From contig NW_025767152.1 of assembly GCF_003918875.1 (NCBI RefSeq), positions 682,001 through 746,000 of the forward strand: 64,000 nt of DNA. The letters are read 5' to 3'. This DNA is from Haliotis rubra (lineage: Eukaryota). Both the position numbers and the translations under genes were made by a program. Of the stretch, positions 2,739 through 51,873 are shown one piece after another. Numbering within the stretch: the stretch's first letter is position 1; every line of letters begins with the position of its first letter. The notes under the pieces were generated by a model. The model had not been told where the DNA came from. It made no database searches and worked only from the letters and a program-made list of their open reading frames with translations.

Positions 2739-3006
2739 NNNNNNNNNNNNNNNNNNNNNNNNNNNNNNNNNNNNNNNNNNNNNNNNNNNNNNNNNNNNNN
2801 NNNNNNNNNNNNNNNNNNNNNNNNNNNNNNNNNNNNNNNNNNNNNNNNNNNNNNNNNNNNNNNNNNNNNNNNNNNNNNNNNNNNNNNNNNNNNNNNNNNN
2901 NNNNNNNNNNNNNNNNNNNNNNNNNNNNNNNNNNNNNNNNNNNNNNNNNNNNNNNNNNNNNNNNNNNNNNNNNNNNNNNNNNNNNNNNNNNNNNNNNNNN
3001 NNNNNN
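2739..3006. other. Assembly gap (N run)
   Basis: Ns. Confidence 1.
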
Positions 3007-8700: not shown

Positions 8701-8866
8701 NNNNNNNNNNNNNNNNNNNNNNNNNNNNNNNNNNNNNNNNNNNNNNNNNNNNNNNNNNNNNNNNNNNNNNNNNNNNNNNNNNNNNNNNNNNNNNNNNNNN
8801 NNNNNNNNNNNNNNNNNNNNNNNNNNNNNNNNNNNNNNNNNNNNNNNNNNNNNNNNNNNNNNNNNN
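8701..8866. other. Assembly gap (N run)
   Basis: Ns. Confidence 1.
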
Positions 8867-46818: not shown

Positions 46819-49800
46819 TCATGATGAAGAGGACCTAAGAAGATTCACAATGGCTTTGTTGAGCCATTTTTCTGCAAAAGAGACATACTTCTCTAATCCC
46901 CGTTGACCCTGGCCGAATTGTTTCAAGGAAAGGAGGTGTTTCACTATAGACATGTTACCTCCCCAACAAGCCAACATCAAGCAGTCACTGTTGCCTGTAT
47001 CAGTTAGTGACAGATCAGCTCCCTCCGACACAAGAAGATTGTATACATCATATTGTCCCCTTGAAGCTGCCATCATAACTGCTGACTGACCATCAGCTCC
47101 CCCTTGCCTGTTGATGTCAAATGTTTCCAAGGAAAGGAGGTGTTTCACTATAGACATGTTACCTCCGCAACATGCCAATTTCAAGCAGTCACTGTTGTCT
47201 TTATCAGTCAGTGACAGATCAGCTCCCTCCGACACAAGAAGATTGTATACATCATAGTCTCCTCTTGAAGCTGCCATCATAACTGCTGATTGATGCAAAA
47301 TCGCCCCTTGCAAGTTGATGTTAAATATTGCCAAGGAAAGGAGGTGTTTCACTATAGACATGTTACCTCCCCAACATGCACACATCAAGCAGTCACTGTT
47401 GAATTTATCAGTCAGTGACAGATCAGCTCCCTCCGACACAAGAAGATTGTATAAATCATAGTGTCCTCTTGAAGCTGCCATCATAACTGCTGATTGATGG
47501 AAACTCCCCCCTTGACTGTTGATGTCAACTGTTTCCAAAGAAAGGAGGTGTCTCACTAACAACATGTTACCTCCCTCACATGCCAACATCAAGCAGTCAC
47601 TGTTGTCTTTATCAGTCAGTGACAGATCAGCTCCCTCCGACACAAGAAGATTGTATACATCATAGTGTCCTCTTTCAGCTGCCATCATAACTGCTGATTG
47701 ATGCAAACTCCCCCCTTGCCTGTTGATGTCAAATGTTTCCAAGGAAAGGAGGTGTTTCACTATAGACATGTTACCCCCCTCACATGCCAACATCAAGCAG
47801 TCACTGTTGTATTTATCAGTCAGTGACAGATCAGCTCCCTCCGACACAAGAAGATTGTATACATCATAGTGTCCTCTTGAAGCTGCCATCATAACTGCTG
47901 ATTGATGCCAAACCTCCTCTTGCCTGTTGATGTTAAATGTTTCCAAGGAAAGGAGGTGTTTCACTATAGACATGTTACCTCCGCAACATGCCATTATCAA
48001 GCAGTCACTGTTGAATTTATCAGTCAGTGACAGATCAGCTCCCTCCGACACAAGAAGATTGTATACATCATAGTGTCCTCTTTCAGCTGCCATCCTAACT
48101 GCTGATTGATGCAAACTCCCCCCTTGCCTGTTGATGTCAAATGTTGCCAAGGAAAGGAGGTGTTTCACTATAGACATGTTACCTCCGCAACATGCCAATT
48201 TCAAGCAGTCACTGTTGTCTTTATCAGTCAGTGACAGATCAGCTCCCTCCGACACAAGAAGATTGTATACATCATAGTGTCCCCTTGAAGCTGCCATCAT
48301 AACTGCTGATTGATGCAAAATCCCCCCTTGCCTGTTGATGTTAAATGTTGCCAAGGAAAGGAGGTGTTTCACTATAGACATGTTACCTCCCTCACATGCC
48401 AACATCAAACAGTCACTGTTGTATTTATCAGTCAGTGACAGATCAGCTCCCTCCGACACAAGAAGATTGTATACATCATAGTGTCCTCTTGAAGCTGCCA
48501 ACATCAGTGCTGTTTGTTTCATCAATCCTCCTTGCATGTCAAGATTAAAGGCTTCACACGTCAACAAATATGTTACAACTGATACATGACCATTGATACA
48601 ACCTATTCGAAAAGTGTTCATCCTGTCATACTTAGTCGTGTTAGTTAAATCTGCTTTGTGCGAGACAAGAAGTTTGAGGATTTCCACCTGCCCTGATTTA
48701 GCACATAAAATTGCAGGAGTATTTCCATCTTCGTCACCAACATTGATCAGATGTTGAAACTGTTTAAGGAGAACGTTTACTATATCTTTGCTTCCTGATT
48801 TACATGAAAAATGAAGACAATTGCAATGTCGATTGTCTGTCGCTGAAACATCAGCTCCCTCTTTCAGTAGGAAGTTGAACACATCCAGCTGTCCTGCCTC
48901 AGCAGCAACCATCAGCAGTGTTTGTGGTCTTTTGTCCTCCTGTCAACATCAAAACTGTCTAGCTGTTTGAGTGCAGCAGCAGTACGCTGAAGATACAGTA
49001 GATTGCCACTCTGTATACAGCCTATGATACTATCGTAGAAGTCACTGACAATAGAAGTTGAAAGGTCTGTCTCTTTACACATCAGTGACACCGAGTGTTC
49101 AAACAGTGAATGGTTAGATGAAACTGAGACCCAATACAGAAAGCATTCACCGGATTTCGTATCTTTTCTGTGAACAATCTCGGGCAGGTCTGGCATAATT
49201 TGTGTCAAGAAGGAGGAGGCTATTTGGACGTTGCTGAATATAGAGTGACCAACTGTCCATCTAAAACACCCTTCTCGGACACCTTGCACCAGTCTGGAGA
49301 TCACTAAAGGATGTAGACTGGAAGTGATGTAGATCATGTTTGTGACATCATCAATGTGGGTTGACTGAAAGCTAGCATCCCTGTTAAGTCTGACTCTTTC
49401 ATATAGCAACTGCAGGGAGCAATGTTCCAGTAACAACACGTCATTGAGATGGCCCAAAGCACAAGCTGCAGCGTCGTGGATGGATGGATGAGAGAAGGAG
49501 GCAACATGATTCTCCACTGTACAGTAGGTGCCGATAAAGTTGCGGATCTCCTTACCGATGTCTGTTCGATTGCAAGACGCTATCTCCTCCTTTACAACCT
49601 GAAACAATGCTGCACATTTTGTCCCCGACTTGAAGGAGACAAGGTCAACTTCCCCACACAGGACGAGGGAGAACGAGGCTGCTGATCTGCTGCTACCTTC
49701 ACGGATAATGGTGTCAAGGTCACCTCTCAGATAGGTCACAGGGTTCTGAAAGAAGTTAGTGATTTTGTGTACCTGGAAGGCTGGGTTGGTACAGTAAAGG

Positions 49801-50503
49801 TGACAGATGAGTGGAAACCCAAACACGTTGTCATGTAATTGTGTAATTGTGTTCTTGTCCTGACTGGAGATATCAAACATGTGATTTCTTTTCCAGACGG
49901 ATTTTATTATAGATTCCTTTTCCTTAGTAGTCAGAGTAGTTGTGGTCATATTAATAACACTCACAGGGTTGAAGAGGTTAATTTTAAACTGGTGAAGTCT
50001 GTTACATCCTTCATTCCAGTTGTATGTTCTAGATGTGAAGATGAAGCGGAGTTGTAGAGGCTTTTTGAATCATCATCACCTAAAGTCTCATTCTTCTTGT
50101 CTGCATTCAATTTTTCAGCTCTCTCTTCCTCTTGTCCTGTTGCTCCTTCTGGACTGAGATGTTTACTATATCATCAGCCAGGGCGGTCAACACTTTCTTG
50201 ATTTTCTGCAGATGGGATGGAAATGCTACAGAACCAAACATATCATCAAACACAATCAGCATGTCACACTGTCGTTGAATTATTGTATCTGCTTGAAACT
50301 CTTCAAGATTTTCAACAAACACAACTTCATATTTCTTTTGCAGATATTTCTCACATATCTTGAGAGCAATGCTTGTTTCCCATCGCCAGGAGCTCCACAA
50401 ACTGCCACATGGTTGTGTTTTTTCAGGAGTTCTTCTGCTGTGTGGAGTGTGTGAATTCCCTCAAACACTTCATTCAGCTGCTTGATCCTGATGCTAAGAG
50501 ATG
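46819..50503 (-). CDS. Terminal exon of a STAND-class (nSTAND3-like) P-loop NTPase + ~20 ankyrin repeat protein; ~1228 aa after restoring four 1-nt A-run losses
   Basis: Acceptor TTTTCAG| at 50504. Walker A VAVCGAPGDGK(T), Walker B MLIVFDDMFG, sensor FIFTSR, GFPL (GxP) motif and winged-helix F.HPSIHD, then ankyrins. ORFs 50280-50519, 50107-50400, 48912-49964 and 46819-48912 fuse when one A is added at each of four T-runs (3685+4 = 2+3x1229). Confidence 0.88.
46920..48516 (-). repeat. Coding tandem array: 8 x 204-bp (68-aa) di-ankyrin units
   Basis: QSAVMMAASRGHYDVYNLLVSEGADLSLTDKxNSDCLxxACxGGNMSIVKHLLSLxTFxINRQGGxxH repeated 8 times (last unit incomplete) with very high DNA identity. Confidence 0.97.
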
Positions 50504-50825
50504 CTGAAAACAAGAACACCAGAAAACTAGAGGACGTCTTCCCAGAAATTGTAACACCAGATGGATTTGGTGTTTAAGTAAAATAGATGCATAATTATAC
50601 ATACAATCTACAATACATTTTCACATAAGGCTAGGGACTAAACAAAAAGCAATATATTTTAATTTTTTAAATATTTCTTCTCCAATAAAACTAGTAACAA
50701 CATCAATGTACAAAGTATGCTAACTTACAGTTAGGTTCATTCCTAATCGGGTCCTACTGAAGACAGATGCTGCACAGTTATGGGAGACATGTTTAGGCTG
50801 TGAGTGACCCTTCACTATTAGTTAC

Positions 50826-50909
50826 CTTGTGATACACAGCCACGATGTCCGGGATTCCCCAATGAAGTGTGAGATGAGTTGGACAGATCATACTGGGATA
50901 CAGAACAAC
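50826..50909 (-). CDS. STAND-ankyrin gene internal exon (GCSVSQYDLSNSSHTSLGNPGHRGCVSQ)
   Basis: TTGTTCCAG| acceptor and AG|GTAACT donor; 84 nt, phase 1-1, fits both neighbouring exons. Confidence 0.6.
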
Positions 50910-51542
50910 CTGGAACAAGAAACAAAATTTGAATGCGTTGAGCAGGTGAGAGTGGAATACTGAACAATCTGGAACAAGACAACACCGTTGAAGGACTTTG
51001 ACAGGTCACACTGCGGTACAGAACAATCTGAAACATGAAAACAACGTTGAGTGACGTGGACAGGAATTGCTGAGATACTGAACAACCTGGAACAAGCAAA
51101 CTGCTGACTATGTTCTTAAAGTGTGCTTTCAGTTTTGGAAAATTGATCATGGTAAATTGTGATCAATCAGAGCTATCAGACGGAATGACAACGAACAATA
51201 ACACAGGACCTAAGCCCAAACAGACATTAAACATTTTAATAACAGTATGTGTGAAGATGATCAATATTTTTAACATATGAAACCAGAATGTTCTTTAATC
51301 GCTATCCTTTAACTAACTTACATCACATTTCATTCTAGACTTTGATTAAGTCCTGTAGGATGTGTAAATATGTTTTTGACCACATATCAGAGATATACTA
51401 TACTGAGAGAAATCTAGAGTAGAACCAGTCCTATTTTGTATTTAACTCTGGCAGACACTCTATCCAAGTACAGTTGGCAGCCATCATGATGGGGAAAATA
51501 TGCTCCAAAACAAGGAGACAGTGATGGTAGGGGAAGATTTAC

Positions 51543-51873
51543 CGATGTGGTTGTGTGTTATTGGAGAACTGGATTGAATTCCCTGTCGCTGGTTCTCCTC
51601 CATTACCGCCGGAGGGTCTGTTCGTTGTAAGGCCATAACACCTTCATGAATTGGGTTGAATTGCATCCCCTCCTTTTGGCTCCCTTCTATTACCACCGGA
51701 GTGTCTGTTGATGGTACGGCGATAACACCTTCTTGTGTTGAGGAAGGGTTGAATTGCATACCCTGCCGTTGACTCCATTTTCTTACCACCGGAGTGTCTG
51801 TTGATGGTAAGGCCAAAGCATCATCTTGTGTTGAGGAAAGGTTGGGTTGTCTCCCCTGCTGTTGACTCATCAA
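51543..51873 (-). CDS. STAND-ankyrin gene upstream exon: three ~30-aa S/T/P/Q-rich repeats (5' boundary uncertain, possibly the acceptor at 51960)
   Basis: ORF 51484-51873; repeats SQxQGMQFNPSSTQEGVxAxPSTDTPVV; CG|GTAAAT donor phase 1. An in-frame stop at 51907-51909 leaves the start unresolved. Confidence 0.55.

Follow-up and report, generated by a model that had tools for sequence, protein, structure and literature searches.

The closest described systems to the locus considered here are fungal NOD-like receptors (NLRs; e.g., HET-E, HET-D, NWD, and Pa_3_8560 of Podospora), in which a STAND (signal transduction ATPases with numerous domains) NTPase is followed by near-identical ankyrin (ANK), TPR, or WD repeats of high internal conservation (HIC). 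Fungal HIC ANK repeats show repeat-length polymorphism and positive selection on their concave face (Dyrka et al., 2014; PMC4986451); in metazoans, HIC repeats are rare (0.8%; PMC4986451). HIC repeats are also found fused to ATPase domains, including nSTAND3, in organisms other than fungi, among them animals (Ament-Velasquez and Saupe, 2026; PMC13449251), and lineage-specific expansions of STAND/ankyrin conflict proteins have been described in marine invertebrates (Kaur et al., 2021; PMC8195603). Here we analyze a stretch of 64,000 nucleotides from the blacklip abalone Haliotis rubra (contig NW_025767152.1, positions 682,001 to 746,000; 'the window'), the minus strand of which encodes eight near-identical double-ankyrin units downstream of an nSTAND3 domain. 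This array is probably the C-terminal ligand-sensing domain of an NLR-like nSTAND3 STAND NTPase that is homogenized by recombination and diversified at its binding groove.

Like the fungal HIC NLRs, the abalone gene places a STAND NTPase before near-identical repeats, has a hypervariable predicted binding face with an excess of amino acid changes, shows concerted evolution and shuffling of its units, and belongs to a large lineage-specific family. Unlike them, it belongs to an animal (a gastropod); its NTPase is nSTAND3, not NACHT or NB-ARC; its homogenized unit comprises two ankyrin repeats (68 amino acids) instead of one; and its N-terminus is a short motif without a known death or HET-type effector. 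The parallel with fungal NLRs had been proposed from the array by an earlier, sequence-only reading; it is strengthened by the nSTAND3 STAND NTPase that precedes the array and by the presence of the published HIC features (PMC4986451). The array also resembles designed ankyrin repeat proteins (DARPins), that is, identical framework repeats with diversity at positions 2, 3, and 13 (and at 14 and 5 in paralog arrays); however, it is natural, its 34-residue repeats lack the histidine of the TPLH motif (methionine is found at position 9), and positions 9 and 10 vary whereas positions 5 and 33 hardly do.

Among animals, the NLR-like proteins without leucine-rich repeats (NACHT or NB-ARC with ANK, WD, or TPR repeats in cnidarians, sponges, and fish) and the metazoan STAND expansions (PMC8195603) share with the abalone gene the lineage-specific expansion of STAND-repeat proteins, in a marine invertebrate. 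Their repeats have been proposed to recognize molecules of invaders; they are described at the level of domain architecture, unlike the array here, which is described codon by codon. The abalone family fits a known kind; new here are a mollusc family described at the level of codons, a unit made of two repeats, and a core of the nSTAND3 type. We know of no previous description, for a mollusc family, of codon-level homogenization together with hypervariable binding-face positions.

Structure and variation of the array

Tandem Repeats Finder identifies a single tandem array at 46919-48516 (period 204, 7.8 copies, 91% matches). Extraction in codon register yields eight units of 204 bp (46894..48525, minus strand), each encoding 68 amino acids, that is, two 34-residue ankyrin repeats (A and B; Pfam Ank_2): u1 48525-48322, u2 48321-48118, u3 48117-47914, u4 47913-47710, u5 47709-47506, u6 47505-47302, u7 47301-47098, and u8 47097-46894, the last with a degenerate 3' end. 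The units are in frame within a 697-codon open reading frame (ORF; 46819-48912, minus strand) that contains no stops and no indels over its 2.1 kb and ends with a C-terminal tail (EKYVSFAEKWLNKAIVNLLRSSSS) and the stop codon (46819..46893). The ORF is clearly ankyrin (Ank_2, E=1.4e-133; Ank, E=2e-82), and the closest sequence matches to the array in the PDB are DARPins and ankyrins.

The near-identity of the units claimed by the sequence-only reading is borne out. The mean identity among u2-u7 is 92.7% for DNA and 85.4% for protein over 408 amino acids, which reaches, as a borderline case, the threshold for HIC repeats (at least about 85% amino acid identity between repeats over at least 100 amino acids; Dyrka et al., 2014); over u1-u8 the mean protein identity is 82%. 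Between u2 and u7, 4 of 204 bases are different.

The differences between units are few and concentrated. In u2-u7, 36 nucleotides are variable; 20 codons vary in amino acid and three vary only silently, and the 37 minimal nucleotide changes are confined to these 23 codons (P=0.005). All 12 parsimony-informative sites are located in seven codons (1, 12, 35, 41, 45, 59, and 62; P=2e-5 for seven or fewer codons). Synonymous divergence (pS; Nei-Gojobori, NG86) is 0.041 when all columns are counted and 0.028 when only the framework is, in agreement with the earlier claim that the framework is almost invariant even at silent sites. The residue strings reported for the hairpin tips (TDK-Y/D/F/Y/D/F/D and TDTG; QGG-IL/SL/SL/SF/AD, QEEVW, and QGAIL) and for the first helix (ML/KL/IM/MC, AC-E/C/W, and AA-S/E-R) are exact, and the combinations said to be shared by u2 and u7 (KD..KLACC) and by u1 and u4 (KY..MLACE) are present as written. 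Some of the shared variants are two- or three-base differences (e.g., TCA/GAA at column 12 and GAG/TGC/TGG at column 45), so recurrent mutation is an unlikely cause of the sharing.

The variable columns were placed on the ankyrin fold by means of HMMER, which aligned the units to DARPin chains (e.g., 6mol and 5le2). In this register, columns 1, 2, and 12 of the unit are DARPin positions 2, 3, and 13, and columns 35, 41, 42, and 45 are positions 3, 9, 10, and 13. The DARPin rows of the alignment vary among themselves at positions 2, 3, 5, 13, 14, 26, and 33, which we take to be the randomized positions of DARPin libraries (numbering after the Binz/Plueckthun design); the 12 columns equivalent to randomized positions were used as the a priori class in all tests. 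These equivalents account for six of the 12 most variable columns in the window array (P=0.0046) and for four of the seven codons with shared variants (P=0.015). Both repeats of the unit vary at positions 2, 3, and 13 and hardly at positions 5, 14, and 33; positions 9 and 10 and the 26-29 loop also vary.

The same pattern is found in two independent arrays of the same family in the Haliotis rufescens assembly GCA_023055435.1. The first (L001) contains 13.4 copies of a 204-bp unit (92% matches) inside a long ORF, and the second (L002) contains 19.4 copies (90% matches) inside a 1762-codon ORF; both have 0% indels. In both, the hypervariable columns are 1, 2, 12, 13, 34, 35, 45, and 46, with columns 37 and 4 varying less. 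In both repeats, these are positions 2, 3, 13, and 14 and, less markedly, 5; DARPin equivalents are enriched more strongly than in the window array (P=4e-4 for L001 and 9e-7 for L002).

The dN/dS comparison that had been suggested as a check also favors selection. From counts of the minimal amino acid changes and silent changes, taken per site for every array, we find that the nonsynonymous rate at the a priori columns is 4.1 times the synonymous rate in the window array (P=0.009; framework ratio 1.4), 3.5 times in L001 (P=9e-5; framework ratio 0.8), and 2.0 times in L002 (P=0.003; framework ratio 0.4). Because gene conversion homogenizes both kinds of site, an excess of replacement over silent changes needs either diversifying selection or a site-specific mutation process. 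In this respect, the arrays show a characteristic feature of HIC repeats, diversifying selection at binding-surface positions.

The units evolve in concert. Framework pS is 0.04-0.13 within the window, L001, and L002 arrays versus 0.49-0.62 between them, and a tree of all units contains one clade per array (support 0.73-0.99). Within each array the variants are shuffled, as the sequence-only reading had surmised when it invoked unequal crossover or conversion: 39 of 66 pairs of informative sites are incompatible in the window array, 190 of 351 in L001, and 499 of 946 in L002, and a permutation test of the pairwise homoplasy index (PHI) type gives P=0.022, 0.0045, and 0.011, respectively. Concerted evolution and repeat shuffling, a second feature of HIC repeats, are found in all three arrays. 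A more local trace is visible in L001, where the last four units (ORF amino acids 1198-1402) alternate in a two-unit pattern (1198=1402, 1266~1334), left behind when a block of two units was recently duplicated. Long minisatellites are found on the flanks of the H. rufescens members (28 bp x 68 copies at 5706-7523 of L001; 43 bp x 37 copies at 422-1984 of L002).

A probably intact nSTAND3-ankyrin gene

The array is the end of a longer gene on the minus strand. Its large exon begins at about 50507, after the acceptor TTTTCAG, with an nSTAND3 P-loop NTPase domain (50110..50507; Pfam PF20720); the piece in the window scores 28.4 bits (cut-off 27.2) and its paralogs score 64-88 bits. The Walker A motif is split in the assembly at 50375 (GAPGDGK|TS) and reads GAPGDGKTS once an extra base is applied; the Walker B motif is MLIVFDD. 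The two motifs fit the consensus patterns GxxGxGK[ST] and hhhhDD, respectively. The NTPase is followed by a helical middle domain of about 385 residues without a Pfam family (48915..50069; 47-68% identity to Haliotis nSTAND3-ankyrin proteins) and by about four divergent leading ankyrin repeats that are outside the homogenized array (48526..48942); the same two divergent rows are found in paralogs P0009, P0017, and P0026. A word search retrieves dozens of proteins that combine nSTAND3 (PF20720) with ANK repeats, 900-1220 amino acids in length, from H. rufescens, H. cracherodii, H. asinina, and H. rubra; the 68-residue unit is common to all, and the paralogs of 1100-1220 amino acids have the same domain order as the window gene.

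As assembled, this gene contains frame changes at about 48920, at 50051-50110, and at 50375 (the last inside Walker A) as well as a scrambled stretch. We compared it with contigs of four public sequencing runs (X1, X2, X3, and X7) from three studies and with two organism labels. All four runs have one more T at 48920, where the middle domain meets the ankyrin ORF (X7 at about half its depth); the runs also have one more T at 50051, at 50110, and at 50375, the last of which restores GKTS. The four runs also carry a compensated indel cluster at 49645-49677 within the middle domain; in X7, and once in X1, some of the differences are present at part depth. Altogether, the assembly differs from all four runs over 48519-50572 by at least 10 substitutions and by eight small indels, most of them within short runs of one base. 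Applying the read-supported indels produces one uninterrupted frame of 1253 codons, with the NTPase ahead of the superstructure-forming repeats at the C-terminus; we conclude that the gene is most probably intact. The local assembly, which we take to be a Nanopore/Illumina hybrid, is error-prone, with an error rate near 0.5-1%. Since apparent frameshifts in this gene are contradicted by public reads, other members of the family that are called broken in the H. rubra assembly may be intact.

The runs also bear on the array. Column 15 of u7 (47259) encodes D in the assembly and Y in every run, and some differences confined to a single unit may be assembly errors. At the hypervariable codons of u6 (47374-47402), the X7 and X2 contigs agree with the assembly; the shared multi-nucleotide variants are not explicable by assembly error. 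At the same codons, the X1 contig (and, in part, X3) differs at codons 35, 41, and 42 and has TGA at codon 44; this variant may come from an allele or from a pseudogene among the paralogs. Coverage by X1 and X3 ends at 50505, where the acceptor of the large exon is predicted, and is absent over 50586-50700, where X7 and X2 provide coverage; because X1 and X3 stop at the acceptor and skip the intron, they behave as RNA. The gene therefore appears to be transcribed, with the kind of each run (RNA or DNA) only guessed by an index.

A proposed recognition receptor and the alternatives

We propose that the window gene encodes a protein in which an nSTAND3 P-loop, a helical middle domain, and about four divergent ankyrin repeats precede eight homogenized double-ankyrin units. 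Recombination within the array, by gene conversion and unequal crossing-over, would keep the units near-identical, and diversifying selection would maintain, and reshuffling recombine, the variants at the beta-turn and helix-1 positions, which would line the concave target-binding groove of the ankyrin solenoid. The outcome would be a germline receptor family that, like the fungal HIC NLRs, keeps its scaffold constant and varies its paratope combinatorially; binding of a ligand to the groove may then free the NTPase for oligomerization and signaling via the N-terminal motif, with non-self molecules as the presumed ligands.

Several results weigh against this interpretation. Immune function and ligand binding are assigned to the array by analogy only, and Pfam searches of the upstream exons and paralog N-termini gave no known effector domain. 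The NG86 omega within the hypervariable columns is only 0.85-2.1; in the window array taken alone, the numbers of changes are small and the framework omega is not below 1 (1.4-1.9), a value probably inflated by assembly errors. The claim that variation is concentrated on the binding face holds for the enrichment at DARPin equivalents in all three arrays; columns 41 and 42 (positions 9 and 10) are neither randomized in DARPins nor classical binding positions. Helical periodicity would put position 9 on the 5-9-13 face of helix 1. At position 10, a core residue is usual. The variable sites of the first helix are classical binding sites only in part.

The proposed mapping of variable sites on a structure model had a mixed outcome. 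A single-sequence AlphaFold2 model contains the expected paired helices in each repeat, and Foldseek identifies AnkB, ankyrin-1, and DARPins at a probability of 1.0; however, the confidence is modest (pLDDT 75), and the global shape matches ankyrin solenoids poorly (template modeling scores of 0.25-0.3) because the model does not reproduce the curvature of a long solenoid. We rejected this model as the basis for mapping, which rests instead on the DARPin sequence register. For repeat-number polymorphism, a feature of the fungal repeats, the one hint is in the RefSeq models, which lack one or three units; the contigs of all runs are short and collapse the repeats. One run contains a joint that skips 165 bp (29 nt on one side) and was considered as repeat-number variation; 165 is not a multiple of 204, and we dismissed the joint as a paralog or repeat effect.

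These observations could be accommodated if the array were a young tandem duplication under relaxed constraint, its variable columns being tolerated surface positions without diversifying selection or recognition. DARPin libraries were deliberately randomized at the surface positions that are least conserved in natural ankyrin repeats, so the enrichment of these positions among the variable columns also fits relaxed constraint; the argument for selection comes from the excess over the synonymous rate alone. The modest NG86 values in the hypervariable columns and the high framework omega of the window array also point to relaxed constraint. However, neutrality or relaxed constraint alone predicts equal nonsynonymous and synonymous rates, and a two- to fourfold excess is seen at the predefined columns in three of three arrays (P<0.01 each); also, shared multi-nucleotide codon variants reappear in incompatible combinations, and framework omega is 0.4-0.8 in the two H. 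rufescens arrays. We regard relaxed constraint as unlikely. False mosaics and false variants could alternatively have been produced by poor polishing that wrote reads of other units or paralogs into the array: the 2 kb adjoining it are poorly assembled, every run contradicts the assembly at column 15 of u7, the RefSeq models skip one or three units from u5, and read depth in the array bins is many-fold above that of the flanks, which indicates many near-identical copies in the genome. An artifact of this kind is, nevertheless, decidedly improbable: the ankyrin ORF is free of indels, contigs of two runs match the hypervariable codons of u6, and the indel-free arrays of H. rufescens repeat the columns, the excess, and the mosaicism.

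The gene could also be a decaying pseudogene, that is, a dead copy with a frameshifted NTPase and middle domain in which the variation of the array is drift. The three frame changes and the scrambled stretch of the assembly favor this reading, and the extra bases at 48920 and 50051 that X7 carries in only about half of its depth would allow for a broken allele. It is rejected on the four-run comparison and the rebuilt frame: the frame-restoring bases are at full depth in X1, X3, and X2 at almost every site (at full or part depth in X7), most of the indels are in short single-base runs, the 1253-codon frame includes 697 stop-free ankyrin codons, and the coverage by X1 and X3 halts at a splice acceptor, as RNA would. 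We give it next to no weight.

If the members of this family are recognition receptors, a mollusc has independently reached the solution of the fungal NLRs, and the engineers of DARPins copied the same design: the ankyrin scaffold stays constant, made uniform by recombination, and a small number of contact residues are selected and reshuffled. The family would then be a testable animal case of how invertebrates without adaptive immunity diversify intracellular receptors. It raises the questions of whether high internal repeat conservation generally marks fast-evolving NLR sensors and whether disease resistance in abalone could map to such loci.

Short RefSeq models and upstream exons

The two RefSeq models of the locus are the 697-amino acid ORF minus exactly one unit (XP_046583077.1, 629 amino acids) or three units (XP_046583079.1, 493 amino acids). 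Both exit u5 at GGAG|GTAAC and re-enter u6 or u8 in phase; the same AG|GT, in the same phase (GGAG|GTAAC, codons G-G-N), is present in seven of the eight units. The short models may reflect allelic variation in length, cryptic splicing, or an alignment artifact. It is conceivable, if very improbable, that AG|GT serves as an in-frame donor/acceptor so that transcripts drop whole units, or that unit number changes somatically, with the RefSeq models as the first trace; if so, unit skipping would provide several receptor variants from one gene in one animal.

Upstream of the large exon, tblastn with P0008, P0011, and P0017 locates a small exon (50827..50910, minus strand; donor CAAG|GTAAC) that encodes the N-terminal motif of the family, GCSVSQYDLSNSSHTSLGNPGHRGCVSQ. 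This 28-amino acid exon is kept at the N-termini of the family, is duplicated in P0023, and is located within a 59-bp x 3.5 tandem repeat (50894-51101); the motif has no match to a known domain. The other ORFs of more than 150 amino acids in the window and the translations of the upstream exons have no Pfam match. The window also contains two runs of N (2739-3006 and 8701-8866), which are either gaps in the assembly or masked sequence. Farther upstream, a region of Q/S/T-rich repeats of about 31 amino acids (51535..51867, minus strand; a 93-bp x 2.3 tandem repeat) matches the N-terminus of P0017 in tblastn and probably forms a leading exon, low in complexity, of the gene that carries the array.

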